Of a stretch of DNA of 64,000 nt, positions 1,981 to 24,682 are shown piece by piece. A program made the position numbers and the translations under genes. The DNA comes from Lepidodermella squamata (taxonomy: Eukaryota; Animalia; Gastrotricha). The notes beneath the pieces are model-generated. The model was not told the origin of the DNA and made no database searches. It saw only the letters and a program-made list of their open reading frames with translations. The stretch spans positions 1,302,001 through 1,366,000 of the forward strand of contig JBLDXI010000003.1 in NCBI GenBank assembly GCA_047495785.1. The letters are read 5' to 3'. Positions within the stretch are counted from its first letter, which is position 1, and every line of letters starts with the position of its first letter.

Positions 1981-3261
1981 CTAAAACAGGGTGATAAGTG
2001 ATAGCACAAGCAAATAGACTTTCACAACAATATTGGCTGATTCGCTTTTAACAGCTTGCGGCGAGAGGGTGGTTATGTAATTAGTCGGGAAAACCACGGT
2101 CGCAAAAGCCTTCGACGGCCGCAGTGCATAGACCATCCCTCTCGAACTTACAACCAGCACAAACCCATTCGCAAAGGCCAAATCGCCAACAAAGTCCTCA
2201 GAAGTCGAATAGATGGCTGAAACAGCGGCTGTGGTCTTATCGAACACAACGATAGCTCGGTAAGCCGGGACCATTACGTAATCATTAACAACAAGTGGCC
2301 GTCCAGTCAGGACCAAATTAGTCAAAATATTTGTACTTCTGAGGCGTTGGCCATTTGTTGAGTCATAGACGTACATCCTGTACGGACATTGCCGGTAAAT
2401 GTATTGAAGATCGGCTGCTATCGATAGATCAGGGCATGTTTCTTCTATGAAATCGGAAGAAGTCCATTTCACAGTTTTCCTCTCAATCTCTACGGCTTGC
2501 ATCTTTCCATTGTTGTTAGCCAGTACATTAGACCCCGAAATCACTGGACTATGAGTTGTCCGTTCGATTCCTGCTATCGTGGTATTCCATAGTAAACTTC
2601 CAGTATTAACCGAATCAAACTCCTGTATCCCTGCTACTTTGGACGCTGATATTAACCTAGATCCTTGATATAGCGATAGTGTTGAAGGGTAGTTATAGAC
2701 ATCCTGGTAATTGAAGTTTGCTATCGCCTCTCCAGTCGTCGAATTGTAGGCCTGTAACTTGTTGTTACAGTAATTCGCAGTGAAAACTCTGCCCAATTTC
2801 GTGCTGACCACCAAATCATTTGGACACCCTGTTTTCGTCCAGATAATGTACTCATTCGCTTCGTCCAATTTGACCGCGTAAATCATTCGCTTCGATGTCT
2901 CGCTGATGAATAAAATTCCTTGAACATCATCGATTGCCAATGCCCTGAATTCGGGTAGGGATATTAGTGGGTCGAGTATGAGTTTCCGCTGTGGATATCC
3001 TGAAGTTAAGTCAATGATATGAAGAATTCCAGGCGGAGTGACGTAGTAGAGTTTGTTTTTCAGGGTTAGCAAGTTAGCACCGAGATCTGTAGTCATGTAC
3101 TTTGTATCAAACATCCAAGCGATTTCGAGGGATCGAACCAGCCCCACTGTTACAGGCTTGAAAGATGTCCGCTCAAAGTCGCCCCCTTCAGCTGTCCAAT
3201 CACCTCGATCTGCAAGGATTACACCTGCTAAACAAGCTACAAGTAACAGTGGTAAATACAT
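1981..3261 (-). CDS. PQQ/BamB-like beta-propeller protein 1 (signal peptide, hydrophobic GPI-like C-terminus), intronless
   Basis: ATG at 3261 (MYLPLLLVACLAGVILA), N-terminal W-x2-GGD-x2-RT motif, repeated blade motifs (LHIIDLTSG, GSLLWN, VYDSTNG), hydrophobic tail VYLLVLSLITLF. Confidence 0.8.
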   Translation of the reverse strand: MYLPLLLVACLAGVILADRGDWTAEGGDFERTSFKPVTVGLVRSLEIAWMFDTKYMTTDLGANLLTLKNKLYYVTPPGILHIIDLTSGYPQRKLILDPLISLPEFRALAIDDVQGILFISETSKRMIYAVKLDEANEYIIWTKTGCPNDLVVSTKLGRVFTANYCNNKLQAYNSTTGEAIANFNYQDVYNYPSTLSLYQGSRLISASKVAGIQEFDSVNTGSLLWNTTIAGIERTTHSPVISGSNVLANNNGKMQAVEIERKTVKWTSSDFIEETCPDLSIAADLQYIYRQCPYRMYVYDSTNGQRLRSTNILTNLVLTGRPLVVNDYVMVPAYRAIVVFDKTTAAVSAIYSTSEDFVGDLAFANGFVLVVSSRGMVYALRPSKAFATVVFPTNYITTLSPQAVKSESANIVVKVYLLVLSLITLF

Positions 3262-3733
3262 TCTGCCGGGTCGCAATTACGGGAAATGAGAAAGTTGCAC
3301 TCGAAATCTGCGTCGGTCTCATTGGGCCATTAATCACACACATAGGTGTGATTTTCACTCCGCACCTTATCGCCGATGAGTAAGATCTTTCTAGCAAGGC
3401 CAGCCAGTTTATGTAATGAATAAATTACCATGACCTCGTCAATCTTTGAAATTCCGCTTCTCTTATATGTGATGTTTGGTCATGGTTTTGCGATGTGAGA
3501 AGCACATTTTGAGACAATACGTATTACTGCAAAAAACAGCGGAACATACACCACATGATTCATTCGTTATATAAGGTATGATTAAAAAATGAGGGTTCCG
3601 TACTTCTATAAAATGCTAAATGCTAATCTATCGATTTAACTTGATGAAAACCTAGAATGGTCTTTTAAAAAGGATGTTTTCTGCTCATTATTAGTGCCCG
3701 CTTTATTTGCAGTTGGGATAAGGAATAAGCGCA

Positions 3734-5755
3734 TCAAAATGCAAAGCAAAGCAGTACACAGATGAGTCCCAGAAAAACACTGGAGTCCGGTTTAAATCCA
3801 CTGCTGATTGTAGTTGTACGACGAGTGGGTCTGGAGGACGTTGACATTTTCGTAGTTGTCGTTTTTGGCGCAGTTGTAGTCTCATCGGCTTTCGTAGTGG
3901 CCACTTCAGTTGTTGTCTCGACTTCAGGCGTTGTTGTCATGGATTCAGTGGTCGTGGGTTGAACTTCATGTGTCGTAGTTGCTGTGGCTGGGGTAGTAGT
4001 GGTTGGTGGTTCTGGAGATCCGGTTGTCGTTGCCTGAGGCGTCGTAGTAGCCTCGGGGGTAGTCGTTGGCACTTCCTCAGTCGTGATTGGAACAGTCGTT
4101 GGCCGTTCAGTTGTAATGGGCTGCGTCGTAGGAGCTTCCGTGGTTGTCGGAGCCTCAGTTGTAGCTGCTGGTGTCGTTGTGGGGATTTCTTGCGTTGTTG
4201 TTGGGGCCACTGTCGTGGTGAGGGGAGCTGTTGTAGGCTCCGGAGTCGTTGTTGCCGCCGCTGTCGTAGCTTCTGGTGTCGTAGTGATTTGCTGAGTAGT
4301 TGTTGGAGCCTCTGTGGTCGTGGGAGTTGCAGTGGGCTCCGGAGTCGTTGTTGCAGCCGGAGTCGTAGCTTGCTGAGTAGTTGTTGGTTCTTGTGTGGTG
4401 GTTGGAGCTACAGTAGGTTCCGGAGTGGTAGTTGGAGCCTCAGTTGTAGCTGCTGCAGTCGTTGTAGGCAATTCGGTTGTGATTGCTGCCGTCGTTGTAG
4501 GCATTTCAGTTGTTGTTGGCTGCATAGTCGTAGTAGGTGCTTCTGTTGTAACCACCTGAGTCGTTGTCTCCACAGTCGTAGTCGGGGGTTGAGTAGTAGA
4601 CTCAACAAATTTGATACTAAAGCCGTAAGTCGCATCCAAACCAGTCGTAAAGACCGTGTTGTCCGCATAGGCCCAACCATGGGAATAAATAGTCCTGACA
4701 TGATTACTAGCCAGAACTTGCCCGGTAACCTTATCGAAAACCGTGATCCCGTTCTGCATGGGTTGAATCAGCACATCGTCTAGAATGATTGGACTATCGC
4801 AAGCTTTATCGTCCTCTGTGATCGTATAGGTCTTAACAATAGCCCCAGTTGCTACTTCAAACTGAGAAATGTTAGTCTCGTAAGCTCGGTAAACAAACTG
4901 GCCATCAGTTGCCGCGTAAAATAGCGTAGTAACTGGGCTTCCAGTCGTCGACCACTTAACCTCATGAGTTTCGAGATCAATCGCAGATAATTCATCATTA
5001 TCAGACACAAACGCTACATTTTCTGAGATGATCGGTCCGGTTGTTGTGCGAAACATTCTAGGTAGTGTCAAGTTCCAGAGAATTTGCCCATCGGTCACGT
5101 TGTATTCGATCAAGTCATTGGTCGCTCCGATGCCGAAAAGCCTTGTATCATCCTTCAGACTGAAGAACCGACCAAGCAATGTACTATTTTCCTCTTTCAC
5201 CCCAAAATCAGGCATTGCTTCTCCAGTCACGAGATCCCGAGCTTCGAGGGTCAAATTGCAGGTCTCTACATTGAAAAGGCGGTTTAGTTTGGCTGCGACG
5301 ATAAATTCCCCAAAGCAGCCAGTGAAGTTCCATAGCAATTTAGGCTCGTCGCCTTTCAAATCAATTGCAGCAAGCTTTTGACTTGTTTTGTAAGATGTGT
5401 ACAGAACTCCACTCTCAGGCTCAATCATACTGAGTTGAGGAACCTCGCCCTCAGGAATGGTTGAGTCGAAAGTTAACACGTTCTTAACTGTACCATTTGT
5501 CGGGTCGAGAAAAGTCACATTTCCAGCAACGATACTTATCAGCTCGTTGTTGAAGACCAAATTTTGAGTAGATAAAATGTCTCGAATACTTGATCGGACT
5601 CGAAATGCCTGTTCGACGGTGTTAATAGGGCCAGCATTCAGCGGTTTATAGCTGGTCCGCTGTAGATCTCCAGCTCGAGTAGTCCAGTCATCCGCAGTAG
5701 CACTTATAATGAGGCTTGAAAGAAAAAAAGCTATCTTCTTGAATATTCCCATCAT
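3734..5755 (-). CDS. PQQ/BamB-like beta-propeller protein 2 with Thr-rich mucin stalk and GPI-like tail, intronless
   Basis: Signal peptide, WTTRAGDLQRTSY, blades (DLVTGE, DGQILW, DLETHEVKW, DKVTGQ), about 270 aa of TTTEAP/TTTPE repeats, terminal VFLGLICVLLCFAF. Confidence 0.85.
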   Translation of the reverse strand: MMGIFKKIAFFLSSLIISATADDWTTRAGDLQRTSYKPLNAGPINTVEQAFRVRSSIRDILSTQNLVFNNELISIVAGNVTFLDPTNGTVKNVLTFDSTIPEGEVPQLSMIEPESGVLYTSYKTSQKLAAIDLKGDEPKLLWNFTGCFGEFIVAAKLNRLFNVETCNLTLEARDLVTGEAMPDFGVKEENSTLLGRFFSLKDDTRLFGIGATNDLIEYNVTDGQILWNLTLPRMFRTTTGPIISENVAFVSDNDELSAIDLETHEVKWSTTGSPVTTLFYAATDGQFVYRAYETNISQFEVATGAIVKTYTITEDDKACDSPIILDDVLIQPMQNGITVFDKVTGQVLASNHVRTIYSHGWAYADNTVFTTGLDATYGFSIKFVESTTQPPTTTVETTTQVVTTEAPTTTMQPTTTEMPTTTAAITTELPTTTAAATTEAPTTTPEPTVAPTTTQEPTTTQQATTPAATTTPEPTATPTTTEAPTTTQQITTTPEATTAAATTTPEPTTAPLTTTVAPTTTQEIPTTTPAATTEAPTTTEAPTTQPITTERPTTVPITTEEVPTTTPEATTTPQATTTGSPEPPTTTTPATATTTHEVQPTTTESMTTTPEVETTTEVATTKADETTTAPKTTTTKMSTSSRPTRRTTTISSGFKPDSSVFLGLICVLLCFAF
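3810..4600 (-). repeat. Coding low-complexity repeat (Thr/Pro/Glu mucin-like stalk)
   Basis: Degenerate TTTEAP/TTTPE units; the plus strand is rich in GTT/GTC/GTA triplets. Confidence 0.85.
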
Positions 5756-6335
5756 TTCTTTTGTTTCAAAGTAGCTCTATTGCGAAATGCACCGGCAATG
5801 CGTCCATTACTTGAATATCAAAATTGTTATCTTTTAGGATCCGGCACTGATATGCCTACTATTTCTGATGCGTATCAAAGAGTTGAGATTTCATTTTTCA
5901 TGAATCACTGACAGATAAATAGGACCTGATATCTTTATTTATTCTTCGAATAAAATAAAGTTGATTAGCCTTGGATTTATAGAAGTCAAGGAATGTGTCT
6001 TAATGTATGCTCAAGGGTCTTTATCGACTCTTTGCTGGAACCGCGATGAAATAGTCGAAAATAGCATCACTACTCGCGAAAATGTTAATATTTTGTACCG
6101 GGAATACCTTCCGGAGGTTTTAAATTGAAGCGAGAATGAAGTACGGCTGAGTTCCTTATAAGATGCAATACTTAACTCAAGCATTCAAGTATTAAGTTGC
6201 GCATTGTAGTGAAATTTTGAAGCCTTGATATGTTAAACACTAAACTGCTCACGTATTACACTATTTCAACGAAGACAGCTTTGTCCAAAGACTACATACG
6301 CAATTTTTGCCATAGTCTGACCTGACCAAAAATCC

Positions 6336-8474
6336 ATGTTTGTGAATGCAAATCATTTTCTGTTTTCTGTGGGCCGTGTCATTCAGCTGATATCTGCCGT
6401 ATCTGGCTGTAGCTCAAGTGGTCAACCTGCAGCAAAAGATTCTTCCCCAGTTACTTATCGAATGGTGATATTTCCAATATGCTAATGGATTGCTTGAAAT
6501 TTTCTAATTTCCTCAAGTATGTTCAATGCTTTTCCAATGGAACTGGGTCATGCAAAGCCGATTCTTGCTCAAGCGGTGAAACAACTGTAAATACTTTTGC
6601 TCGACCAGAAGCACATCGTAATTTTTGTTTTAGATATCAGATAAATTCTCAGATTTGGTTGTCTGTCAGAAATTTGCGCAAGTTAAATATACACCAAATG
6701 AAAATCGCCATATCTAACATCCCTATTGTTAAGCGTCACGTGATTTGCGGCTACGGAAATGACGACATCACATGCGTACCTGCTGTACCAGGGTGCTCAG
6801 GATCACTTCGGTTGGCCAAGGAAGTGAGAAAACTTCCTTAAATCAATTCAAACCTTCTCAATTATCGACGCCCCACGCCCCCTTAATTGTCTTCCAGGCA
6901 ATCTCACTCTCAATCTCCCATAAAGATTTTTCATCAATACTTAATTGAGCCTAATTAAGCCCCTAACAGACTAAGCGGCAGACCGTAATAACAGCAAATA
7001 CCCAAAACAACAAACACGACAAAACAGCAAATTTTTCAACTGCGTCATAACAGCAAAAACACGATGCATCCTTTACATAGTTAGAATTTACTGTGTTTAT
7101 CGCGAAATAAAAAAGTTCCTTTTTTGTCGCATTCGCTGTTCTGCGCAATTGCTGTTTTGTCGCCGTCCGGGCTGAGCTAAATGTCTCTACCTCATTTAAA
7201 AAGCCTTGAAAACCCCACCTATCTATCACTATCACCTATCACCTATCTGCTTACTTATCTATAGTTTACGGCGAGCATCTTCGACTCAGTCGATCAGTGC
7301 GTGGCTACGATGACTAAATCGGTAAATGCCTGATAACCTCCACGACCTCGCACTTCCAACTCTTGTTCCGTGGTTCCAGCGATATGTTATCTGCGAGAAC
7401 ACCTACTCGACTCTAATTTGCGTAGCATCTCAGCCAGGATGTACCGGCGATTGGAGAGTCAGTTCGAAGGTGAGAGTAAAGTAGGAGGCAATCATTCTGT
7501 CAACCAATGCTGCGTTCATTCATCAAGTTCGACAATCAAATATTCCACTCTGTTGATCAATGCGCTTTGGCAATATCTGCTAGCCCAAAGGTTCGCTCTT
7601 GAAAAATGGATTGTACCCTCTATTGTCTTCCAGTATCAATTGCAGGCCTGCAAAACATGCAAAAATGGCGCACAATGTGCGCGGGAAATTTGGCCGAATT
7701 TAGCTGAATTTGGGGAAATTTTCGAAAAATTACAGTAAATTGCAGGAAAAAATTTGCTGAAATGGGTCAAAACTAACGGGAAATTTTGAGAAAGTGCGCG
7801 GGAAATTTCGCAGGTTTTGCAGCCCTGATCAATTGTGCTCAATGACGACACAGGGGTCTGGTCCTGGGTTATCTCAAACCATCAAATTTTGCCACAATGT
7901 TGCCGGAACTGGCAATAGTATGTGTAACGCTTATCTGACAGTAACACCTTCTGCTGTGGTGAGTCATTCACGCATTCAATCGAAATATATATCAATTTAT
8001 GCCGCTAGGCTTCAAGCGACTGGCCCAACGCATTCAGCACGTTCGCTCGATGCTGCGCTTCCACGCAGACACCTGCCAACGTTGCCTGGATCAAATACGA
8101 AGTCATCCCACAGACCAGCAATGCTGCTGGGATTCTGACCTGCATTGGAGCAACTGACGCGGCTCCTTACAAAGTAACAGCTCTTGCAGCAAATGGTGGG
8201 ATGCTTGCCTATTGCGTTCGATTCCCTCACACTGCTACCGATTCTTATAGTGTCGTTGTAACTTCATTGGTGAGTACGGGCTTTATCGTCGATCAAGATG
8301 CAGGGTGTCATAATTGATTATGATATGTTTCAGAGGGGAGTTGACAACTATTCTTACGCTTCGTTCGGAGCTTGCTGTTCCGGACTTGGCAAGGCGGAAA
8401 CAAACATGGGTGCTTCCACAGCTAGCATATATGGCGTGAAAAATATGGAAATATGTACTGGCAGTAACATCTAA
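6336..8474 (+). pseudogene. Multi-exon Cys-rich, possibly secreted, repeat protein of unknown family; probably disrupted by a MITE in a coding exon
   Basis: Many small GT-AG-bounded exons give internally repeated modules: RHVICGYGNDDITCVPAVPGCSG / RYVICENTYSTLICVASQPGCTG; FTASIFDSVDQC / FDNQIFHSVDQC; FSTFARCC / YASFGACC. Final exon ends ICTGSNI-TAA at 8474. The exon starting at 7634 is interrupted by the 7643-7827 element. Confidence 0.55.
7643..7827. mobile_element. hAT-type MITE (family A, copy 1)
   Basis: TIRs CAGGCCTGCAAAAC...GTTTTGCAGCCCTG with perfect 8-bp TSD ATCAATTG (7635-7642, 7828-7835); homologous to 15716-15881. Confidence 0.9.
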
Positions 8475-8559
8475 TAGAAATATTAATGAATTAGTGATTA
8501 AACATAATTAATTGACTGGATTATATACTGTATACTAGTCGGGCTTACCGTCCGCATGC

Positions 8560-8900
8560 GGCCGTCTGAGCAGGTCATCATGGTCGGAAGGCTCTTATAG
8601 AAAGTTGCTGGAATGCGGCCGGATGCCTTGTTTCGCGTGAGCGAGATGCGAAAATGGAAGTACTTGGGCAGTTTAGATCGCTTGGGACCATAAACCTCTC
8701 AAGCCATAAACTAGCTGGCGGGCTAATTTTAGGATGGATTGTGTACATTTTTCCCCGCGTAGATGATGTGACAATCAAAATTCCGGTTGTTGGCTCGATT
8801 ACAGTCGACTGAGTCCAACAAGGGCTATCGCAGTCTGTTTCACAGTCGATATGATTCATCAGCATCCCGTTGCTTGGGTCGATTGTGCAACCTCGGCCGT
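8560..8900 (-). pseudogene. Relic fragment of the beta-propeller family
   Basis: VIEPTTGILIVTSSTRGKMYTI aligns with paralogs (MIEPESGVLYTSYKTSQKLAAI, VIDPDTGVLYTAFDNDILYAI). No signal peptide; frame lost downstream. Confidence 0.55.
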
Positions 8901-9027
8901 TAGGTATAAGAGAACGCAGGAGGTTTTTGCAGTTTCGAAATGCATATAAAACGTCATGCGATGTATTCAAAATATTAGGTTTTATTGTTAAACAACTATG
9001 TAATTATAAATGCAACTTATGTAAAGT

Positions 9028-9384
9028 TCAACCGAAGTAATACAAAAGCAAACACATGGCAAGCATAGCAGACCCCACCACAAAGCCCAGGACAATGAAC
9101 GTTGTTTTAATGTTGACTCTCAACTCGTTCCTGTCCAGTTCATAAATTGGCAGACTTCCATAGCCCCGCGTATTCCTCGATTCGATGAAAACGACTTGAG
9201 GAGGTTCGTCCAAGACTCTTTGCTGGCTGATTGAATGCTGAATCCGAAGAGGCTGAGCGTTCAGTTGGTTCGGCGAATCGACGATGGGAGCGCGAGGTAT
9301 GCCTTCTGCCAAGACTTTGGTGTAAGATGGAGGAGGTTCTTGCCAGCTGCCATTCAAGGGACCAAATCGCTCTGCTTCTTCCAT
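9028..9384 (-). CDS. Small tail-anchored membrane protein with PPxY motif
   Basis: 118-aa ATG ORF, PPPSY motif, single C-terminal hydrophobic helix (TFIVLGFVVGSAMLAMCLLLYYF). Confidence 0.55.
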   Translation of the reverse strand: MEEAERFGPLNGSWQEPPPSYTKVLAEGIPRAPIVDSPNQLNAQPLRIQHSISQQRVLDEPPQVVFIESRNTRGYGSLPIYELDRNELRVNIKTTFIVLGFVVGSAMLAMCLLLYYFG

Positions 9385-9506
9385 TTTTTTGCTCGACTTT
9401 ATGGATAATAAGTATTAAAGGTGTTTCTTTCAGCAAGAATTATGCGATAAGGCCTCTTATCTGTAATACTAAACAGTTGAACCGGGTGAGATTTGCCAGC
9501 ATGAGA

Positions 9507-9926
9507 TCAAGCCAGAAAAATCATCATCGCAATGAATCCGCCTAAAATCAGAAGGAACAGCGTAAGGGCCACTAGTTTGACGCGGAGTGGCAGGCGACGA
9601 GGGTCATTAGGCCCACTTGCATTAATCGTGGTCACGTGACGGTGTTCCAGCATGTGCTGCTCTTTCAAACTCGCCCTGGCGTTGTCCCAATGCCAGGAGG
9701 CTTTGTTCGAGAGTGGAGCATGCCCCGAGCTGGGCGATGCCGCTTCCATGATCTCGACAATAGGATCTGTCGATTGAATCCTGTCCAACTTCTCGTGGAA
9801 GTACCGAATTCGAGGATCCCGAAAACCAGACCTTACACTGTCCTCCTCAGCATCATCGGGATCATCGGGTATTTGAGAGCCACTCAGCTCAGAAGCAGGA
9901 TAGGTTATTGAATCTGCTCTATCCAT
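9507..9926 (-). CDS. Small tail-anchored membrane protein (start uncertain)
   Basis: Hydrophilic N-terminus and C-terminal TM helix (LVALTLFLLILGGFIAMMIFLA); same architecture and orientation as the neighbouring ORF. Confidence 0.5.
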   Translation of the reverse strand: MDRADSITYPASELSGSQIPDDPDDAEEDSVRSGFRDPRIRYFHEKLDRIQSTDPIVEIMEAASPSSGHAPLSNKASWHWDNARASLKEQHMLEHRHVTTINASGPNDPRRLPLRVKLVALTLFLLILGGFIAMMIFLA

Positions 9927-10431
9927 GTGTTGTTGTTGTTTCAGCCCAGAATGTCGAGACAAAGTCGAAATAAATGCCGTGTTTTATGGCGACTGCATGG
10001 CCTGATGTACTAATTGAGAGCAGCGGCGGCGACTGATAACAAATTTTCACAGAATTGCACTTGAAGCTTCCGCTGTCGTAAATTGGGTGCATTTTGATAT
10101 CTCACATGCAAAGCATTCTGTCTGGTGTTGATGAGAGCTGTTGAGTCTTCACAAATACGGGGGAGGAACAGGAGAGGAACAAAATACTAAATAGAGATTG
10201 CTCTAGCTTCCACTCTTCCAATATGAATCAGCTGTATTTCATTTCGCTTATTTCCTCAGTCGTTCAGTTAGTTTCGTTTTCGATGAATTTTTCTTCTCAA
10301 TTCTGAACCACTGAAGGTGGTAAAGAAAGAAGCTTACAGGTTAGGAATTCCTTGATTAAGTTTAAGCCTCCAATTACCCGTGCGCAATGTTAGCTTTATT
10401 AACTATTTCCCAAACAATTATAAGTATGCAG

Positions 10432-13323: not shown

Positions 13324-14637
13324 ATGATATTACGAAAAACATTCTTTCACCTCCTCAATTCTTTGATATATGCTGATTTCGCAATTGCAAATTGGCTCAC
13401 TGTTGGCGGTGATCAGGAACAGACTAGTTATCGACCCGAAAAGTTGGGCATAATCAATGCTGCTAGAGAATTATGGTCTTACTCAACTTCAAGCCTGAAA
13501 AATGCTGGATTAGGGCCTTTAGTCTTCAACGGCCAAATCTACGTCATATCTTCAAACGGGATTCTTCATATTTTAAATGAAGACGGCAATTTAGTTAGAG
13601 CTTTCGCCGTTGATAAAGACGGTATGGCTAGTCCTACTACTCAACTGATAGATGACGACAACAGGATCCTATTCATCGCAACTAGGGTGAAAATCTATGC
13701 TATTACTTTGAAACACGGCAAAGAGAGGACAATTTGGTCCACGTCAGCCAGTAACCCTTCTGCATTAGCCGTGAATTCTAAAATGAATTTCCTATTCGCT
13801 GTGATTGGCTCCTCGCCTCGTTTGATGGCCTATGACCTTCTATCCTCAACGCCTGGTAGGCTTCTACTGGGCAATAACGAAACAATCCGCATTTCTGTAT
13901 CTATGCTTTCTAATCATCGTTTATTCACTATAGCAACGGCAATTGAGTCAGGCAATGACTTCATAGCCGAACTAGAGACCAGTGGGAATTTCTCAGAGGT
14001 TTGGCGGGAGAATTTCGATGACCTCACCACAAATCGCCACGGGCCTATGTTAGCGGAGAATCTAGCTCTATTCAATAACAAAGCTCAAATTGTAGCTATC
14101 GAAGTCGAAAACCTAGAGATTCTGTGGATGTCTAATGACGAAAGATGGACTCAATGCGCTAGGACCTCATCTCTAGCCACAGATAATGAATTTATCTATC
14201 GGGCGTGTCGAGATCGTATTTTCAAATACGAGATAACAACGGGGAAATTCGTAAGGAATTTTAGGGTGGATGCGTCGGGGTGGCATGCTCCTATCATCCT
14301 AGAAGACTCGATAATCTCGTTAGACTCAACTCGAGTTGCATTTCTTGACAAAGAATCTGGCATTGAGTCTGCTTCCATGTCTCTATCCGCGAGGGTGACG
14401 ACGCCGTTTGCGTACTCGCATGGCAAAATCTACGCATTTGCAAGCGATGATTGGATCTATGCGATTGAGCCATACTACCTCAGCACGAAACATATTACCT
14501 CTGATCTGACGAATGTTACGCAGACGCCTTATGTTCTCGTGAGATATTCTGATGGTTCCGGTGCCGCAGCTTCGTGTCAAACTTACAGAATACTTTCAAT
14601 CTTGTTATGTTTATTTTTGTCTTCGCTTGCTTTGTAA
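13324..14637 (+). CDS. PQQ/BamB-like beta-propeller protein 3 (GPI-like tail), intronless ORF
   Basis: NWLTVGGDQEQTSYRP motif, blades shared with paralogs, C-terminal ILSILLCLFLSSLAL after a small-residue stretch (GSGAAAS). Confidence 0.8.
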   Translation: MILRKTFFHLLNSLIYADFAIANWLTVGGDQEQTSYRPEKLGIINAARELWSYSTSSLKNAGLGPLVFNGQIYVISSNGILHILNEDGNLVRAFAVDKDGMASPTTQLIDDDNRILFIATRVKIYAITLKHGKERTIWSTSASNPSALAVNSKMNFLFAVIGSSPRLMAYDLLSSTPGRLLLGNNETIRISVSMLSNHRLFTIATAIESGNDFIAELETSGNFSEVWRENFDDLTTNRHGPMLAENLALFNNKAQIVAIEVENLEILWMSNDERWTQCARTSSLATDNEFIYRACRDRIFKYEITTGKFVRNFRVDASGWHAPIILEDSIISLDSTRVAFLDKESGIESASMSLSARVTTPFAYSHGKIYAFASDDWIYAIEPYYLSTKHITSDLTNVTQTPYVLVRYSDGSGAAASCQTYRILSILLCLFLSSLAL

Positions 14638-15935: not shown

Positions 15936-16113
15936 CAGGATGACCAAAACATTCCGCAGAGCGGGAATTCGCCGCGCATCAATTTAATGAGGAGTTTTAG
16001 AAGTTGAAGAATTTCAAGCACTCTTTTGCCAATGGAACTCCTCAATTTCTTGAAACTCCTCATTAAATTGATGCGCGGCGAATTCCCGCTCTGCGGAATG
16101 TTTTGGCCACCCT
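15936..16113. mobile_element. Palindromic (foldback) MITE, Tc1/mariner-like ends
   Basis: About 60-bp near-perfect inverted arms (CCAAAACATTCCGCAGAGCGGGAATTCGCCGCGCATCAATTTAATGAGGAGTTT and its reverse complement) around a short spacer; TA on the left flank. Confidence 0.8.
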
Positions 16114-16248
16114 TTAGCTTCTTAATTCTTTATTGATTGCCTTTCCAAACCTGATATCGTGCTTACTCGGATGAGCAAACAGACTTTATTTTCGCACCTT
16201 TATTCCATCTTTATTTAGAGCTGCACCTGAAGCTACAGTTTGCACAAT

Positions 16249-17599
16249 ATGTACTTGATTGCTCTCATTGCCACCACTTTAATTGCACTCAAAAGCTGCG
16301 ACGCCTGCCACAACATCGCAACTGCCTTCCAATACCTACCTGTATATTACCGCGAAAGTAAAGTCAAACCTACCAACCTCGAGAAAGCTGCTTGTCTGGG
16401 TGAGAGATTACCCAATATTGCAAATGCTCAGATATCTGAACCAAAATGGCTGGAAGTTTTGTATGCCATTGAATTTCTATGCAATTTTGGCACACTGCCA
16501 AGTGGACCGAGAACAGTAGCTCTTTGCTATCCATACTCAAACTCGACTTGGCATTTCTTTGGATCATGCGGCATTGGTAATCCTAATGATTCATTGGATA
16601 AGCGATGTGATTGTTTGCTTGTTAAGGTTTCCCGAAACTTTACCCGAAATGTGGCGATCCCGTTGTTGAAAATGGAAGGGTGTTCTCTGGATCGAACGAC
16701 GTAGGAAGCATCCGTGAATTCGAATGTAATTCCGGCTACGATATGACTGGTAAATCGTACCTAGCATGTGATATCGATCAGAAATGGTTCATGGCGGGTA
16801 AATGCATGCCAAGATTTTCTGGTGAGAAAATTCATGGGAATTCTGTCCATTATTTTTTGATTTTTTTCAGGTAAAATCCCTGAAGCAGTCACAAGAGGTA
16901 TTATCAGTTTTGCTAACATTAAAATATCTTTCAACTTGGGTGATAGGACCTCGGGAAGTCACAACGCAGCCATCCGTTAAGAAAAGAGCCCCTCCTGCTG
17001 TTGAAAGGTGCAATTGCAGCGGTAAGGACTCGCCACAGCTTCTGAGAGCGATTTCAATGAGAAATTACACCGCGGTCAACATGCTACTGACTTCCGGCTC
17101 TGCCAGTTACGGGACGAAGATGAGGGGGCATTCAGCTTTCAGCTTAGCCGCAAATTCCGGGGATCCTAAGATACTCTCGGTCTTCCTCAACTGTACCATC
17201 TGCTTCGATTTAGAGGCAACTGACCCCTTCAATTCAACAGCTATAATTCTTGTGGCGAAACAGCGTGATCAGCCGAAAATTTTGAACCTTTTGATAAATT
17301 CTGGAGTTGATTTAAGAGCATTCAATAACTACAACATGACTGCTCTTCATTACGCGGCTACGTATGGCTACGTTGGGAATACGAGAGCTTTATTAGGTAA
17401 TTCAACCGAAATGATAAATTATCAGAACAAGGATGGAAACACAGCTCTCCATCTCGCTGTCAAATGGAACCATGCTCCTATTGCAAAGGTGCTAATTGAG
17501 AAAGGAGCTGTCAAAAACATAAAAAATACTGAAGATCTTACACCTTTAGATTACGCTGTGAAAGCTAACAATACTGAAATCTCCGACATTTTTACTTGA
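16249..17599 (+). CDS. Secreted Sushi/CCP x2 + ankyrin-repeat protein; exons 16249-16576, 16627-16821, 16871-16897, 16947-17599
   Basis: Signal peptide; two CCP-like modules (C..LPNIANA..FLCNFG..C..W...C and CGDPVVENG..FECNSGY..C..W....C) separated by phase-1 introns; then ankyrin repeats (TALHYAA, GNTALHLAV, TPLDYA). Confidence 0.75.
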
Positions 17600-18193
17600 A
17601 TAGGAAATATTTATCTCAACAAATAATTTAGTGCCTTTCGAATAAATTACTGCTGCCATATTTCTGCCACGTGAGCCTGCCATCACTCTCAACGATATAC
17701 GAATGGTTGACCGGAATGTAAAAATTGCTGATAAATATTTCAAAGTCACCATCGGCCTTGCGCTTAGCCACTGTCAGATAAGCTGTTCTGATCAATTGCT
17801 GGAAACAACGAGCCAAGTAACGCTTTCACCAGCCGCGAAGTTGGCAGAGAGGTTTTGACTGAGAGTTAGACTCGATTCCTCAGAAGAAATTTCCGAGTCT
17901 CTCATAAGTAAGACGAAAACAAAGAGAATAAATGGAAATGAAGCTTTTTCGCACTATGTACAAGTTTTTTAGATGTTCACATCAGGGCGCCACTTTCTGA
18001 AGGACAAGTTTTTCTGCTCATGACGCGGAACGACTAAACAGCTTTGCCAAATCCTTCGTGGATTTTAGCAACTACCTAACTACCGAACTTTGAATTGGAA
18101 GTTTTGAGATGAACAATTCCGAATGTTAGGATCACTTGAAAAAACATCGACAAAAATTGCTTTTACTCATCATGATTCCGCTTATTTCAGACC

Positions 18194-18225
18194 CATAGAG
18201 AATAAAGGTAACTCTATTCTCTATG
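18194..18225. mobile_element. 32-bp micro-MITE
   Basis: 11-bp TIR CATAGAGAATA/TATTCTCTATG flanked by perfect 8-bp direct repeat TTCAGACC. Confidence 0.75.
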
Positions 18226-18253
18226 TTCAGACCCTTCCATGTTTCATGTATAT

Positions 18254-19405
18254 TCAAGAAATGCGCAGCGCATACAATACATTAGCAAGCGAATGACCGT
18301 AGATCATGCCATCATAATACGACCACGGAGCGTAGCCAGTGTAATCAGTTTGATTGTACGAAGTTGTAATCTGGCCAGTTGTTTTGTCAACAGCCACAAC
18401 ACCATAAGTTGTCGGCACAATGATCGAATTTTCTAGAACTATTGGAGCAGCCGAACCTTCAGCTCCATTTAGAGGCGCAGTTTTCTCTAGTTTCCCGTTG
18501 GCCGCGTTGTAGATCACCAATGCTTTATAGCAAGTTTGGTAGACAAACTTGTCATCAGCTGATAGATGTTCAGCTATCATCCAATGTTCGCTGGGTGCGT
18601 AGGATTTCCATAGAGTCATGCCATCGTTCAACGAAATAGCTGCTACAACTGAATTATCATTTACTATTACCTTATCCTTAGCGCATATCGGGGTGAGATG
18701 GATCAGATCAGTCTGTGTTGGCAATGTCCAAAATTTAGCTCCATCGCCAGAGTTGAGCTTGCTCAAAGCTTGTGAGAAGAAACCTTCAGTGAAAATCGCC
18801 CCATTTCTCTGGCACATGTGCTTAGGATTCTCGATTTCGTCCACGTTTGAACCATAACCTGTTACTATCGCCCCTGTGCTAATGTCGTAGGCGATTGGTT
18901 TCCGTTCATCCCAATCCCATACGATCAGCCGCTTCTTATCTGTATCAATGGTGAAATCAGCTTTCACACCTCGGTACCCAGTAGACCATAAAACTCGTTC
19001 TGAACCTACTGATCGAACATCGATGGCGTAGATGAGTTCCCTTTCAACTAGAACCGCGACCAGAATGCCTCGAACGGAGTCGATCGCCAATTGTCTGGTG
19101 ACACATTTCCTTGCCTCAGGAAGTTGAAGCGAAGCTGATAGTTTGCCAGTTTTAGCGTTCAGAATATGGAGTTTGCCATAGGTTCCAAGGTAGTAGACAT
19201 TTCCGTTGTATATAACAGTTTGCCGAATACTGTCAGAGTCATACTCACCACCAACAGCAGCAGACCAAGCTAGTTCGATTCGGGTTATCTTCCCTGTTTT
19301 CTCAGGCCTGTAGCCAGTTCGATCGAAGTCGCCGCCGTAGGAGACCCAGTTTTTAGCGGCATAGCCCGATCCGCAGATTATTGCAAGGATTATTAAAGCC
19401 TTCAT
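18254..19405 (-). CDS. PQQ/BamB-like beta-propeller protein 4 (soluble, secreted), intronless
   Basis: MKALIILAIICGSGYA signal, NWVSYGGDFDRTGYRP, blades LNAKTGKL, DGMTLW, NAANGKL, VDKTTGQ; ends at the last blade. Confidence 0.85.
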   Translation of the reverse strand: MKALIILAIICGSGYAAKNWVSYGGDFDRTGYRPEKTGKITRIELAWSAAVGGEYDSDSIRQTVIYNGNVYYLGTYGKLHILNAKTGKLSASLQLPEARKCVTRQLAIDSVRGILVAVLVERELIYAIDVRSVGSERVLWSTGYRGVKADFTIDTDKKRLIVWDWDERKPIAYDISTGAIVTGYGSNVDEIENPKHMCQRNGAIFTEGFFSQALSKLNSGDGAKFWTLPTQTDLIHLTPICAKDKVIVNDNSVVAAISLNDGMTLWKSYAPSEHWMIAEHLSADDKFVYQTCYKALVIYNAANGKLEKTAPLNGAEGSAAPIVLENSIIVPTTYGVVAVDKTTGQITTSYNQTDYTGYAPWSYYDGMIYGHSLANVLYALRIS

Positions 19406-19578
19406 TTTTCTCGTAATGAGGTAGTGTGGCACCTATGCCACTTTATCAATAGGTGAAATGTACCCAAGATAACGTTGGGGACTATGTAAACACAGATTAA
19501 AACAGTCACGTGACATCACCTTTGACTGCACGGAATTCCCAGAGAATTTATCAGATAGACCGCAGAACGGCATACGCA

Positions 19579-20440
19579 GCAAAATCTGCGCGATTACTTT
19601 GAAACACGGGAAAGAGAAGACAATTTGGTCTCACTCAGCCAGTAATCCTTCTGCATTGGCCGTGAATTCTAAAATGAATTTCCTATTCGCTGTGATTGGC
19701 TCTTCGCCTCGTTTGATGGTCTATGACCTTCTATCCACAACGTCTGGCAGGCTTCTACTGGGCAATAACGAAAAAATCCGCATTACTGTATCTATGCTTT
19801 CTGATCATAGACAACTCCATACACATCGGAAACTAGCGATCTTCCTATAGTAAATAAATTCACACCAAAACGTGAAAAAGTGGGCACACGACCTTCACTT
19901 TTATTCACTCATCGCCCCATCCGCCCATTGTAATTTTTCGGATGTTTTATTATTTTCTAAAATTCCATGAGAAAAAGCTTCATTTCCGACAAATTTCAAA
20001 CACATTTTCCGAAATGCTAGAAGCACTCCTCTATCGAATGAGTCCCGTCTCATGAGACGGTTTTTTTCTACCTTTTTCAAATTGTCTCAAAGTTGGTCAC
20101 TTCTGTGAAAAATCGCCATTTCAAGAGTTTTTCCTGACGGTAAACCTTTTCATTTGGACCGAAAAATTCCGAGAAAAATACTATGATCTTATTTGATTTT
20201 TGCTCTATCCAACTTCATAGCCGACCTAGAGACCAATGGGAATTTCTCAGAGGTTTGGCGGGAGAATTTCGATGACCTCACCACAAATCGCCACGGGCCT
20301 ATGTTAGCAGAGAATTTAGCTCTATTCAATAACAAAGCTCAAATTGTAGCTATTGAAGTCGAAAACCTAGAGATTCTGTGGAGACAGATGGACTCAATGC
20401 GCTATGATGCGCTAGAACTTCACTCCTAGCAACAGATAAC
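19579..20440 (+). pseudogene. Fragmented near-identical partial copy of beta-propeller gene 13324-14637 with an insertion of about 400 bp
   Basis: 19579-19808 matches about 13690-13917 and 20212-20440 matches about 13958-14190 with deletions; unrelated sequence lies between. Confidence 0.85.
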
Positions 20441-20580
20441 GATTTCCCAAAATATATATTCTGACAGATACCGTAACGCCATTTGACGATTATTTAATTT
20501 GCCAGATTTTATTGACCAAGATATCATATATGCAAGCGTTTAGGCCATAGATCACTCCCTTCTCTATGGTTTAATCAGGT

Positions 20581-21726
20581 TCATTCATGCAAGCTGACCG
20601 CCACAACGGTATTACGGGCATCAACACTGAACAGCATTTTGTTGGAATAGGCCCACTCAGCTCCAGTACCTTTAGCCGACACATCATACCTGAAAAGCTC
20701 GTACAGCCCTTTGGTATAAACTATTATGCCGCTCGATGTGCCCGAAATTATGACATCGTCCGTGACAATTGTGTTAGCGGTAAACACATCACCGCCGGTC
20801 AACTTAACGCTGTTGCTGAGGGAGCCATCTTTCAGGTTGTAGGCGTACATGCTGAAATCACAGGTTCTGTAAGCGTAAGTCGCATCTGCCGCAGACATGG
20901 TGGAATATTTGCAATTATTCTCCACCTTGTTGGTCGTGGTCCACTGTGCAACTTGAGAATCCATGTTGACTGCGATTGTTGTTGTGCTGTTGTGAGTGAT
21001 AATCAAGTTGTTCGCAATCTGCGGCCCGCCTGGGACGAAGGGGTCGGTAAACGTTAGCTGGTAACGCCAAAGTGAATGGCCACTTCTAGTGTCATACTCG
21101 CGGAGCGCTCTGTCGTTCATAATAGCCATCAGCCGCTGTTTAACGTCCATCGCGAGGCCCGTGGGGATAGCTTGTCTATCAACATCGAAATTGCCAACTT
21201 TATTTCCAGTCTTTAGGTCGAAAGCGTGGATTCTTCCATCTGAATTGTACGGCACCGCGAATACCAGGTTGAGCGGAGAGCTGACCACTGGCTCGTAGAA
21301 GTAACCTTCAACCGACCACATGACCGTTGCCTTGGCCAGATCGACAGCGTAGAGTTTACCGGTGCTGAAAGCTGTAAGAAGGATTCCAGATTCGATCACG
21401 GTGTAACGCTTCGGGACGTTGTAAGCTGCTGTGTCAATCACAAGCTGGGTGACTGGTGTGCCAGTTTCAACTTCGAGACCGTACAAAATACCGAATGGGT
21501 TGACGTAATAGACGACGCCATTGTATACCAAGGTACGCTCATAAAAGCCTTGAACACCCCTGCCAGTAGGGAAGGTCCAGGCTAGTTTAGCGCTTCGAAC
21601 ATTTCCTGTGCTTTCAGGTTGGTAATACGTATGGGCGAAGTTGCCTCCAGTCGCGATCCAATCGTTTGGCGCAGCTTGGATAGCCAGGGCAGCTTGAATT
21701 GCTAACAGGGAAAGTGAGAGGATCAT
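20581..21726 (-). CDS. PQQ/BamB-like beta-propeller protein 5 (soluble, secreted), intronless
   Basis: Signal peptide, DWIATGGNFAHTYY, blades LYAVDLAKATVMW, IHAFDLKTG, YDTRSGHSLW, YNLKDG. Confidence 0.85.
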   Translation of the reverse strand: MILSLSLLAIQAALAIQAAPNDWIATGGNFAHTYYQPESTGNVRSAKLAWTFPTGRGVQGFYERTLVYNGVVYYVNPFGILYGLEVETGTPVTQLVIDTAAYNVPKRYTVIESGILLTAFSTGKLYAVDLAKATVMWSVEGYFYEPVVSSPLNLVFAVPYNSDGRIHAFDLKTGNKVGNFDVDRQAIPTGLAMDVKQRLMAIMNDRALREYDTRSGHSLWRYQLTFTDPFVPGGPQIANNLIITHNSTTTIAVNMDSQVAQWTTTNKVENNCKYSTMSAADATYAYRTCDFSMYAYNLKDGSLSNSVKLTGGDVFTANTIVTDDVIISGTSSGIIVYTKGLYELFRYDVSAKGTGAEWAYSNKMLFSVDARNTVVAVSLHE

Positions 21727-22290
21727 TTTCAGGAATAACTACCAGATTCATGTGGCTATTGGGCTATTTATACTTGGAGAAAGCAATTATTGCCTGTCGG
21801 TCAAGAAAGCTTATCAGGGCATATTTGGCAGCACGCCCTATACTCTCACTCCCTGAGAATCAATAATAGGTTGAACTTCTATTTTTATAACAAATTAGGT
21901 GAACATTTTTGGCACGTAATATCGGTTAAAAAGTGTATCGATATGTCGAGCACACCTTTTTAACCACGGACCACAAGGAAATGGATACAAATGTAAACAA
22001 ACTCAGCCCATTATTGTCCAGAGTGTCCAGAGTATAATTAGGGCAAAGCAGATAAGCTTCTCCCACGCGTCGCGATGCAGCTGCAGTAACTCAGGCCCAC
22101 TCCACCGCAGGGCCAAATCTTCGAAATTCTGCGCACTAAGTTTCAGTACATTTACCTTCAGGGTTTCTACAGATGAAAAACGATAGCTTGGGTTTTGCCA
22201 AACTCTTGCCGGCAAGGAAGTCTATGGAAAACCACTTACCAAAAGTTTCTCTATTTGCATACCCTTTTATAGCGGCTGGTTTTAATTTTC

Positions 22291-22902
22291 CAGGGTGGCT
22301 GTTTCTACTGTAGAAACCTTTTTGGGTCGATGTATAAATGTATATACTAAGACAAAGAAAATGAAATCGATGTCGCTGAACACGATTTTGCTTTTAGAAT
22401 TTCCGTAACTATCACCGTTCCGAAGCTACGATTACTTCCGGTCATAATTACTTTTATGGCCCTACCATAAAAGTATACTTATACATAATTACTTTTATGG
22501 CCCTACCATAAAAGTATACCCAAAAGTCATACTCGGACCTGTTACACATGTTCTAGAGTAACTTTTCACGAGGAATTCAATGGTGCAAGCAGTTTATTTG
22601 TGAGAGCGACCTATAACGGTCTACGATACATTGCTTCTCGACTGTTCAAGCTTGCTCAACCACCATTGTGGTTCCTTTTACCGTGAAAAAAACTGGGAGC
22701 GAACGCCAAAAAATTGTCCCATAGTCACAACTTACGAAAACAAGCCATAAATAGGTGTAAATGGGGAACAAATCGGGCGAAAAATGAAGAAATACTTGAG
22801 GCGAATTATTTATATGTATATACATCAACTTTTTGGGGCGTGTATATACACATGTATATACACCATGTTTATACATTTCATGTTTATACATTGGCCACCC
22901 TG
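22291..22902. mobile_element. Probable non-autonomous DNA transposon
   Basis: Short TIR CAGGGTGGC...GCCACCCTG; internal 36-bp tandem duplication (22443-22519); TSD not clean. Confidence 0.45.
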
Positions 22903-23296
22903 AATAATTTTCTCCCCTTCGATTCTGTACACCAGAAAAGTATCACCTCAATTTATCTACCGAAAGCATGAATTTGGTTTCGGTATCTGAATTAGGGCGT
23001 TTTTTTCTGGTGTAAGGTGAAGGGATTAGAAATGCTCTCGGTTGCTCTTCAAGGCCTCCTCGCCTCGTCGTATTTGATCTACTCTTCTCAACTCGCCTCC
23101 TACACCGTTCAGTAAAGTTGAAACCGAATTAGCGATATAGGATGTTGGCATCATATGCGTAGTTTGGCTCCTGCCAATTGTGTACCTTTTAGCTGAATTT
23201 AGCTATAAGACCGGTTCGTTATAACCAAGGTGCACTGGAATTCAGATCATCACGGCAAAAAAGTCTAATGGTTGCGTAACATTGTTCAAACAATTT

Positions 23297-24682
23297 TTAA
23301 TTCAGTAACGAAACGATGGCAATAAATACGAATGGTGTGAATTGGATTGGTGAATTTTTACTATTAGCCGAATTTTCGGACGTTGTCTTCGGTACCATCG
23401 GAGTGGTGCTCATAGCCTCTGTTGATGGAAGGGTCGAATATACAGTATTTGTCACGATTTTCGTAGTCTCCACTGACGTAGTCGTCACAGCAGACGATTC
23501 AGGGGCCGATGTAGTTGTTAGCAACTCATTCTTTAGTTCGAAAGCCAAGATCGTATTAAACACATCAAGGCCATAGAAACGCCCATTGAAGTACGCCCAG
23601 TTATCACCATATAATGTCTGCTTCTGATACAGCCCGATCATCTCACCCGAGTTCTTATCGAAAATAACGAAACCTTGAGAAACCGGCGAGAAGACGATAT
23701 CGTCCAAAACAATGATATTCCCAGAGAAATATTTTACAAAATCAGGAAGTTCCCATGTTGCCAATAGATTTCCGGAGTTTTCAATGTCGTAGACATACAT
23801 TTTTCGCCGGCATGTTCTGAAGACTTTCTTACCATCAGTCGCTAACTGCCGGGTGTACGCGCAGCTATCATCCTGAGCATCCTTCGTAATCCATTTCTCA
23901 TTTTGGCTTTCAACATCCAAAGATGTCAAATACAGCCCTGTTGCGAAAAAAGCTGAATCGCCATATATTACATTTAGTGGGTAAGATCTAGCTGGAAATG
24001 TGAAGTTCCATAGCTGACTCCCAAACTGGCTGTCATATTCGGCGAAAATCTGAGTTTTGTCAGAATTCGCAAAAATCCTTGAACCATCATTTGAAAGGCC
24101 GAGATAGAAAGCGCATTCATCAGGAGTGTAAGGGTTGAACTCAGTATAATCTTCACCAGAAGTTTTGAAGGCCCGTATTCGACCCCGGTCCAAATCGCAG
24201 GAGCTCGTTCCAAGGATTAGACCAAGTTTCGAACTCGATACAAGTGAACTGAGGCAAACATCAGTCCTCGACCAAAGAATTGCCGGCTTGTCATTGTTGA
24301 GTTGAATCGCGTACAAAATGTCATTATCGAAAGCAGTGTATAAAACTCCTGTATCTGGATCAATAACTGTTAAATGGCTTTGAGTAACATTGACACTAGA
24401 ATCAATTGAAAATTTGGTCAACAGTTGCCCAGAAGTTGCGTCTAATATGTAAAGAATCCCGTCAGAGCCAATATAGTATAAGTTGGATTGGAAAATCAGT
24501 GGCATCATGTCTGAGTCGGTATTGACAGCGTCGAGTTTGTAACTCCATGCCACTTGGATTGTTGTGAAGTCTCCGATTTTGTCGGATCGGTATCCAGTAT
24601 GCGAGAAATCGCCACCCTTAGCGATCCAGTACGGGCTGTTCGAAGAGAGGGAACATTCCACAAGAATGGAAATCAAAATCAC
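23297..24682 (-). CDS. PQQ/BamB-like beta-propeller protein 6 (S/T-rich stalk, GPI-like tail); 5' end unresolved
   Basis: YWIAKGGDFSHTGYR, LYILDATSGQL, FDKNSGE, hydrophobic tail. No in-frame ATG upstream of the signal region; a TTGCAG acceptor near 24686 suggests a small upstream exon, or there is a frameshift. Confidence 0.75.
   Translation of the reverse strand: MILISILVECSLSSNSPYWIAKGGDFSHTGYRSDKIGDFTTIQVAWSYKLDAVNTDSDMMPLIFQSNLYYIGSDGILYILDATSGQLLTKFSIDSSVNVTQSHLTVIDPDTGVLYTAFDNDILYAIQLNNDKPAILWSRTDVCLSSLVSSSKLGLILGTSSCDLDRGRIRAFKTSGEDYTEFNPYTPDECAFYLGLSNDGSRIFANSDKTQIFAEYDSQFGSQLWNFTFPARSYPLNVIYGDSAFFATGLYLTSLDVESQNEKWITKDAQDDSCAYTRQLATDGKKVFRTCRRKMYVYDIENSGNLLATWELPDFVKYFSGNIIVLDDIVFSPVSQGFVIFDKNSGEMIGLYQKQTLYGDNWAYFNGRFYGLDVFNTILAFELKNELLTTTSAPESSAVTTTSVETTKIVTNTVYSTLPSTEAMSTTPMVPKTTSENSANSKNSPIQFTPFVFIAIVSLLN

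Follow-up and report, generated by a model that had tools for sequence, protein, structure and literature searches.

A large family of PQQ_2/BamB-type eight-bladed propellers with predicted signal peptides and GPI-type tails in the gastrotrich Lepidodermella squamata

Introduction

Why does an animal chromosome carry a cluster of genes for what look like bacterial beta-propellers, and what might their products do? The question is raised by a stretch of 64,000 nucleotides from the gastrotrich Lepidodermella squamata (GenBank assembly GCA_047495785.1, contig JBLDXI010000003.1, positions 1,302,001 to 1,366,000), called the window below, to whose numbering all positions refer. Between positions 1981 and 24682 it holds six open reading frames (ORFs), here genes A to F, together with two gene relics. 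The original prediction, made from the sequence of the window, took the encoded proteins for propellers of the pyrroloquinoline quinone (PQQ)/BamB type that had been acquired horizontally and had diversified into soluble and glycosylphosphatidylinositol (GPI)-anchored surface proteins. The reading that we favour, at a probability of about 0.6, is that genes A to F belong to a large and old family of extracellular, non-catalytic, eight-bladed PQQ_2/BamB propellers that forms a repertoire of surface and secreted binding proteins and is most likely of old prokaryotic origin.

To our knowledge, propellers of the PQQ_2/BamB type have been described almost exclusively from prokaryotes, as modules of the surface or the periplasm. 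Full-text literature searches for such a propeller family in animals retrieved no description of one. A 2026 preprint describes PQQ-type eight-bladed propellers in many eukaryotes, but the proteins concerned are dehydrogenase-like (bioRxiv 10.64898/2026.07.14.738520). What is presented here is a known fold and a known Pfam family in a new architecture, a new host and a new copy number.

Results

The encoded proteins are PQQ_2/BamB-type propellers

In a search with the profiles of Pfam, five of the six proteins, A to E, passed the gathering score of PQQ_2 (PF13360; 27.6 bits) with 29.7 to 57.3 bits, and F came just under it. The weaker Pfam matches of A to F were all to PQQ-type propellers. AlphaFold2, run on an alignment of 18 family sequences, gave a confident model of D as a propeller of eight blades and about 31 strands, with a predicted local distance difference test score of 84.3 and a predicted template modelling (TM) score of 0.85. 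Foldseek matched this model to BamB with TM scores of 0.72 to 0.79, and also to tetrathionate hydrolase and to YxaL (PDB 7dxn; TM score of 0.73, root mean square deviation of 3.9), and a profile search of the PDB gave E values of 3e-20 for YxaL and about 1e-16 for BamB. In the ESM Atlas, the fold neighbours (TM score of about 0.8) were all archaeal or bacterial PQQ_2 clusters and the feature neighbours were all bacterial. Over BamB and the prokaryotic PQQ_2 models together, the TM scores ranged from 0.72 to 0.82. PQQ_2 scores, structure model, Foldseek, Atlas and PDB profile thus agree: the window proteins are eight-bladed propellers of the PQQ_2/BamB type and, as had been predicted, bacteria and archaea hold the nearest relatives in sequence, in language-model features and in fold, apart from three eukaryotic proteins (described below) that score as well as the best prokaryotic domains.

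BamB (YfgL), the outer-membrane beta-barrel assembly lipoprotein, is the best fold match. Like the window proteins it is an eight-bladed PQQ_2 propeller of about 360 amino acids, and it acts as a non-catalytic binding scaffold, but sequence identity between the two is only 15 to 18%. Unlike BamB, the window proteins have dozens of paralogs and a predicted eukaryotic signal peptide, and they can carry a C-terminal stalk or GPI-type tail. BamB proper was also considered as an identity and rejected: the best scores against TIGR03300 and NF008351 were 37.4 and 30.5 bits against equivalog cut-offs of 285 and 423, the N-termini resemble eukaryote-type signal peptides without a lipobox, and the genes lie among animal genes with no partners of the beta-barrel assembly machinery. 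The closest solved protein by sequence is YxaL of Bacillus velezensis, a secreted stand-alone propeller of eight blades with no known catalysis; unlike the window family, YxaL is bacterial, single-copy and devoid of anchor or stalk, and its own mechanism is poorly understood. The best profile matches were archaeal and bacterial surface proteins with PQQ-binding-like repeats (Halovenus rubra, Omnitrophota, Eremiobacterota and Bathyarchaeota). These are extracellular and share an N-terminal W-x3-G-G-D-x2-x-T-G-Y motif with the window family, but they are often giant multi-propeller chains (1200 to 4900 amino acids) and use prokaryotic export signals. The propellers of EMC1, IRE1 and AASDH/ACSF4 belong to the same broad fold class, and weak Pfam matches were seen to Beta-prop_ACSF4 (up to 46.8 bits; cut-off, 133) and Beta-prop_EMC1_N (about 17 bits; cut-off, 34). 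However, EMC1, IRE1 and AASDH/ACSF4 are multidomain housekeeping proteins of the endoplasmic reticulum or cytosol, whereas the window proteins are stand-alone and predicted to be at the surface or secreted. No EMC1 or IRE1 chain was found among the best 60 of the 74 PDB matches with E values up to 0.01, in line with the expectation that the family lies outside the established animal propeller families.

If the propellers were extracellular enzymes, that is, hydrolases or lyases of glycans or sulfur compounds or metal- or PQQ-dependent oxidoreductases that had expanded for digestion or detoxification, one might point to tetrathionate hydrolase among the fold matches, to clusters of the lambda-carrageenase type among the Atlas matches and to protein E, which passed the cut-off of the PQQ-dependent dehydrogenase family PF01011 with 30.9 bits. 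That match, however, was restricted to E, F and A and, in a profile of 595 positions, to 60 to 75 N-terminal ones between positions 4 and 90. Scores against the quinoprotein dehydrogenase model TIGR03075 did not exceed 30 bits (cut-off, 480), and the propeller of about 360 amino acids is without the long inserts that bind cofactor and metal in quinoprotein dehydrogenases, which have 560 to 600 amino acids. Columns conserved in at least 80% of 57 full-length copies of the family (described below) hold mainly the W, G and P of the repeats. The polar residues H29, R203, D284, D326 and K341, conserved in 81 to 88% of the copies, would fit an active site, but no polar residue is invariant in the 57. 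Moreover, an identity of 22 to 28% between neighbouring paralogs and a GPI anchor on a mucin-like stalk would be atypical for digestive enzymes. We regard enzymes as an improbable explanation, and the PQQ-dependent dehydrogenases were rejected as the identity of the family.

Six diverged genes and two relics

The six genes (Table 1) have ORFs of 381 to 673 amino acids. Every pair of them gave a tblastn match, with E values of 1e-17 to 1e-38 and 23 to 29% identity over about 360 to 400 residues, and the aligned propeller parts are 22 to 26% identical to that of D; judged by these alignments, the mutual similarity is far beyond chance. In all six, a hydrophobic N-terminus is followed by the motif W-x3-[GA]G[DN]-x2-[RQH]T-x-[YF]. 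The signal region and the motif that had been claimed for every member are therefore present, with a spacing after the tryptophan of x3 instead of x2/3. As had also been claimed, D and E stop with the last blade and the other four run on past the propeller, by 29 (A), 39 (C), 57 (F) and 271 (B) residues, to a hydrophobic end without a cytoplasmic tail. In these four, small residues (S, G, A, N) lie 8 to 12 residues before a terminal hydrophobic stretch of 12 to 16 amino acids, and all four fit a GPI-type tail by our hydropathy rule (the tail of A has a hydrophobicity of 2.66). In the stalk of B, 59% of the residues are S, T or P, and its coding DNA is made up of degenerate repeats with periods of 81, 99 and 33.

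Table 1. Propeller genes and relics in positions 1981 to 24682 of the window, with their scores against PQQ_2
Feature	Position	Strand	PQQ_2 (bits)	Description
Gene A	1981-3276	-	40.9 (E 2.4e-10)	ATG at 3261; predicted signal peptide, eight-bladed PQQ_2 propeller, spacer of ~30 aa, C-terminal hydrophobic GPI-type tail
Gene B	3734-5755	-	43.7	Predicted signal peptide, propeller (4607-5755), Thr/Pro-rich stalk of ~270 aa, GPI-type tail
Relic 1	8581-9003	-		Old, weak fragment; only profile positions 72-149 matched
Gene C	13324-14637	+	29.7	Predicted signal peptide, propeller, spacer of ~40 aa, GPI-type tail
Gene D	18254-19432	-	57.3	ATG at 19405; predicted signal peptide and propeller, ends at last blade (putative secreted form)
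Relic 2	19581-19808 and 20212-20407	+		Internal fragment of a C-like copy with stop codons; 403-nt insert at 19809-20211
Gene E	20581-21726	-	51.4	Predicted signal peptide and propeller, ends at last blade (putative secreted form)
Gene F	23297-24682	-	25.4	Propeller, Ser/Thr-rich stalk of ~60 aa, GPI-type tail; family profile score of 414 bits

All six paralogs and both relics that had been predicted were found, with a correction that concerns the starts of three genes. A and D start at internal ATGs. F is without an in-frame ATG, though its frame is open for 480 codons. An ATG at 24720 lies 38 nt upstream of the first codon of F and out of frame, and a variant in the public DNA run X2 with one extra base behind 24682 would bring it into the frame of F. 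The reference haplotype of F may be a null allele or contain a sequencing error. The stretch from 23813 to 24222 of F exists in two versions in both public runs, one equal to the assembly and the other with 38 differences in 410 positions (about 9%); the two are either very divergent alleles or the trace of an unresolved near-copy. Gene E has its closest paralog on contig C15, with 73% identity and a ratio of nonsynonymous to synonymous substitution rates (omega) of 0.47.

Relic 1 was recovered with a tblastn E value of 4.9e-5 and with E values of 8e-4 and 2.5e-6 in two scans with profile hidden Markov models (HMMs). The two parts of relic 2 are 92.6 and 91.3% identical in DNA sequence to positions 13690 to 13917 and 13958 to 14164 of gene C, respectively. 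The insert that separates them has a depth of 3000 to 6800 in run X2 and is a high-copy repeat; one X2 contig is without it and has 40 other letters at this place, which indicates an insertion polymorphism. A candidate for a third relic, a short ORF on the minus strand (25060 to 25247) with a signal-like start and, by eye, a W-E-F-SGD-x2-R-E-F segment, was not matched by the family HMM and was rejected.

The family has at least 65 genes in the genome

A search of the 121-Mb genome with the family profile gave 99 matches on 24 contigs. We fetched 57 full-length copies in single ORFs, which formed 41 clusters when grouped at 60% identity. About 10 further copies lie as two halves in adjacent ORFs. 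The family comprises at least 65 genes. Among the places where copies were confirmed is the region from 842 to 888 kb of contig C3. A hydrophobic 10-mer with a score of at least 2.0 within the first 30 residues was present in 54 of the 57 copies, including A, B, D, E and F; C reached 1.54. Terminal hydrophobic tails scoring at least 2.0 and followed by 0 to 4 residues were found in 40 copies, 13 scored below 1.5 and mostly ended at the last blade, and 4 lay in between. On the tree described below, tailed and tail-less forms have switched at least eight times. Together with the relics, the tandem arrays and the number of clusters, these switches bear out the birth-and-death evolution that had been proposed.

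Contigs C46 (439 to 520 kb) and C29 (3798 to 3895 kb) share three collinear pairs of family genes (loci L010 to L016) with synonymous divergences (dS) of 0.11 to 0.20 and omega values of 0.17 to 0.24, which suggests either a duplicated block or divergent haplotypes that were assembled separately.

Constraint on the scaffold and variation on one face

For 12 informative pairs of close paralogs, omega determined by the method of Nei and Gojobori was 0.17 to 0.49, and of the 24 nucleotide differences listed for E and F when the public runs are compared with the assembly, 10 were nonsynonymous. Therefore, the genes are under purifying selection, and gene-wide positive selection is ruled out by the range of omega.

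The alignment of the 57 copies was mapped on the strands of the D model to locate the variation. The loops D-A and B-C, which lie together on one face of the propeller, had a mean entropy of 3.2 and standard deviations in length of mostly 1.6 to 3.7. The loops A-B and C-D and the strands A to C had entropies of 2.4 to 2.5 and strand D had 2.9; in 10 of the 15 A-B and C-D loops the standard deviation in length was at most 0.5. The N-terminal motif is the most conserved part (entropy of 2.05). The same order was seen in pooled omega values: 0.45 for the D-A and B-C loops, 0.24 for the A-B and C-D loops, 0.26 for the strands and 0.14 for the N-terminal motif. Omega is higher on one face than elsewhere but stays below 1 there when pooled, and no positive selection was found.

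The genes are part of the animal genome

Uninterrupted ORFs and Pfam and NCBIfam neighbours that are only prokaryotic are what one would expect of bacterial contamination or an assembly artefact. However, the propeller genes are interleaved with an intron-bearing P450 gene, genes similar to pentameric ligand-gated ion channels (pLGICs), ankyrin genes and a long interspersed nuclear element (LINE) on a contig of 4.6 Mb, and family copies lie on 24 contigs. Candidate GT-AG introns in the neighbours measure 80 nt in the P450 gene and 50 nt in a pLGIC-like gene, which agrees with the claim that the propeller ORFs are uninterrupted beside genes with introns. Two public runs that are independent of each other contain the sequence, and the proteins show eukaryotic features in their signal, stalk and GPI-type tail. 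Furthermore, some family members have introns themselves: a copy on contig C16 has a single GT-AG intron of 52 nt whose removal joins the two halves exactly where the family alignment continues, and copies on contigs C28, C24 and C3 have comparable short candidate introns. Contamination is excluded because of this genomic context, and we give it a negligible chance.

The G+C content at third codon positions (GC3) is 0.43 to 0.56 in the copies of the window and 0.44 to 0.52 in neighbouring host genes. Since GC3 is host-like and introns are present in some copies, any transfer must have been old.

Some further features of the window were noted. On the minus strand, positions 25634 to 30600 hold a tandem array of three very divergent pLGIC-like genes (Neur_chan_memb, 29 bits), each apparently split by an intron of about 50 nt. 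An ORF of 134 amino acids with a signal-like start and no Pfam match is present on the plus strand in two copies (31290 to 31694 and 40861 to 41265) that are about 9.6 kb apart and differ in one amino acid; they flank a LINE reverse transcriptase ORF (37718 to 40388). The plus strand also has an uninterrupted amidase ORF of 552 amino acids with a signal-like start at 45760 to 47418 (Pfam Amidase, 204.7 bits). Four ankyrin-repeat ORFs (16910 to 17599, 48447 to 49367, 50187 to 50906 and 55455 to 56174) have a conserved Cys-containing N-terminal segment in common; unusually for an ankyrin protein, the ORF at 48447 begins with a signal-like segment. As to the taxon of the host, searches for nematode cuticle collagen (PF01484) and arthropod cuticle protein (PF00379) gave no match; since the controls were silent too, this is weak evidence.

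Relatives outside the genome and the origin of the family

A word-based homology search with D alone found no match, and only profile searches gave relatives. Exhaustive profile search of 1.84 billion protein representatives yielded 15,087 matches. The 14 matches with E values of at most 1e-30 were all giant multi-propeller proteins of 1296 to 4982 amino acids; the best match with a single propeller was protein P0020. In two large protein searches, eukaryotic relatives outside this genome numbered only three, and the remaining matches were prokaryotic and distant. Two of the three, P0020 and P0156, are 45% identical and come from short transcript-like contigs in one set of public runs of another eukaryote. 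The only other relative of P0020 is a protein of the bdelloid rotifer Didymodactylos carnosus, annotated as "unnamed protein product", whose gene (L035:6912-8156 on contig CAJNOQ010003277.1, 20.8 kb, 36% GC) is intronless and encodes 414 amino acids without a tail. The prokaryotic relatives that bear names, which come from cluster look-ups only, are scattered over Halovenus (Halobacteria), Omnitrophota, Eremiobacterota and Holosporales, and the N-terminal motif is common to archaeal and bacterial proteins, for example, P0003 and P0059. An HMM made of own copies only gave the three foreign eukaryotic proteins 147, 99 and 85 bits and the best prokaryotic domains 98 to 108 bits; the similarity to prokaryotic proteins as a whole is remote, at 85 to 108 bits. 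The median number of cysteines is 4 in the eukaryotic proteins versus 1 per prokaryotic domain.

A maximum-likelihood tree was calculated from 41 own representatives, the three foreign eukaryotic proteins and the 30 top-scoring prokaryotic domains; it is unrooted, many of its rows have a biased composition and several branches are long. All 44 eukaryotic rows lie on one side of a single branch with support of 100/99 and every prokaryotic row lies on the other. L044, L045 and L055, which are own copies without a tail, group with the three foreign proteins, and the own copies were monophyletic in none of 200 bootstrap trees. Nesting of the foreign sequences inside the own family, as in the best tree, is not claimed, since a monophyletic set of own copies is not rejected by the approximately unbiased (AU) test (p = 0.325).

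These data bear on two accounts of the origin. According to one of them, the family is an ancient eukaryotic or metazoan one, inherited vertically from an early ancestor that already had a secreted PQQ_2-type propeller; most lineages would have lost it, and in this one it would have expanded. The single group of eukaryotic sequences, their grouping with the three tail-less copies at the expense of own-copy monophyly, and the host-like composition and introns all fit vertical descent, as does the reported occurrence of PQQ-type eight-bladed propellers in thousands of eukaryotic proteins (bioRxiv 10.64898/2026.07.14.738520). However, the two large protein searches gave only three eukaryotic relatives, and the AU test leaves the own copies free to be monophyletic. 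The structural and feature neighbours are all prokaryotic, and the best 60 of the 74 PDB matches were without EMC1 and IRE1 chains. The rotifer gene, moreover, is intronless, and bdelloid rotifers are a group known for massive gene uptake. We consider vertical descent possible, at odds well short of even.

According to the other account, the family descended from a prokaryotic PQQ_2 propeller gene that was acquired long ago and fully domesticated; the signs of this domestication would be a composition like that of the host, the additional cysteines, the sorting signals and the introns that some copies have. Since the similarity to prokaryotes is remote, the genes are host-like and the eukaryotic sequences form a single group, an old prokaryotic acquisition has only roughly even to slightly better odds. 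The horizontal, bacterial origin that the original prediction had put forward is therefore plausible and unproven: the remote similarity and an unrooted tree with one eukaryotic group beside the prokaryotes do not demonstrate it.

Transcription

In the public run X1, presumed to be RNA, the depth was 0 between the genes and up to 208 over the start of D, whereas the DNA run X2 had an even depth of about 80 to 100. The end of one X1 contig, at 19414, lies 9 nt upstream of the start codon of D, and F is covered from 23463 to 24691. The X1 contig over relic 2 carries the sequence of gene C, with 17 differences over 228 nt, which matches the divergence of C and the relic. C, D and F are thus probably transcribed and E more weakly so; the X1 contigs cannot rank expression.

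Discussion

The large family of extracellular, non-catalytic propellers that we favour would work as follows. The proteins would enter the secretory pathway by their N-terminal signal peptide. The forms that end at the last blade would be released, and a GPI anchor would hold the tailed forms in the outer leaflet of the plasma membrane, with a short spacer or a long Thr/Pro stalk carrying O-linked glycans below the propeller. The scaffold, with its N-terminal W-x3-GGD-x2-(R/H)T-x-Y segment, its strands and its turns A-B and C-D, is kept by purifying selection, and the D-A and B-C loops on one face would form the ligand-binding surface. Together the proteins would make up a repertoire of binders, at the surface or secreted, that serve recognition or adhesion, with microbes or glycans as possible targets. 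That they act like lectins or recognise microbes is a reasonable guess. The data show the fold, the number of genes in the family, the sorting signals as features of the sequence, the constraint and the place of the variation; that the tailed forms are GPI-anchored, that the proteins bind ligands and where the family came from is what we infer.

Several points weigh against this interpretation. Binding, localisation and anchoring are deduced from features of the sequence, and the signal peptides and GPI-type tails were called by simple hydrophobicity rules and by eye rather than by a trained predictor. The D-A and B-C loops tend to vary more in many propellers, and the pattern seen here would be expected without any diversification of ligands. 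Omega was never clearly above 1; its highest value was 0.99, in the top-face loops of E versus its paralog. That run X1 is RNA is a guess, and none of the runs is recorded as RNA. As to the origin, the prokaryotic similarity is remote, with best domain scores that overlap those of the eukaryotic relatives, and in the unrooted tree the eukaryotic group lies beside the prokaryotic domains and not inside them, with no donor lineage. Relatives are present in a rotifer and another eukaryote, and the family is therefore not confined to this animal; the databases searched omit this genome and its close kin, and absence from other animals is not established by them.

Animals have other expanded families of GPI-anchored or secreted recognition proteins, such as the variable lymphocyte receptors (VLRs) of lampreys and the fibrinogen-related proteins (FREPs) of molluscs, which we cite by analogy only. 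Like the propeller family, they have a repeat scaffold with one variable face, occur in anchored and secreted forms and are encoded in multigene clusters with relics; unlike it, they are built on leucine-rich repeats and fibrinogen domains, which are unrelated folds. Evidence for somatic diversification, immune induction or positive selection was not found in the propeller family. A more far-reaching idea is that the family is a germline-encoded recognition repertoire with a role in immunity, in the sorting of symbionts or in self/non-self discrimination, built on a prokaryote-derived propeller in anchored and secreted forms, in which the tail-less subfamily shared with the rotifer and the other eukaryote would be ancestral. 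We regard this as a tentative idea that is rather unlikely to hold in full.

For the family of binders that we favour, the implications are as follows. A propeller of prokaryotic type, to which a predicted signal peptide, a stalk resembling mucin and a GPI-type tail have been added, has become one of the larger families of secreted or surface proteins in an animal genome. If the proteins are indeed binders, their scaffold would be a new addition to the few folds that have been expanded in animals for recognition outside the cell, and they would be a clear case of a domain of prokaryotic type that was domesticated and then diversified. If, moreover, the recognition repertoire is real, the propellers would be a previously unknown type of animal pattern-recognition receptor.

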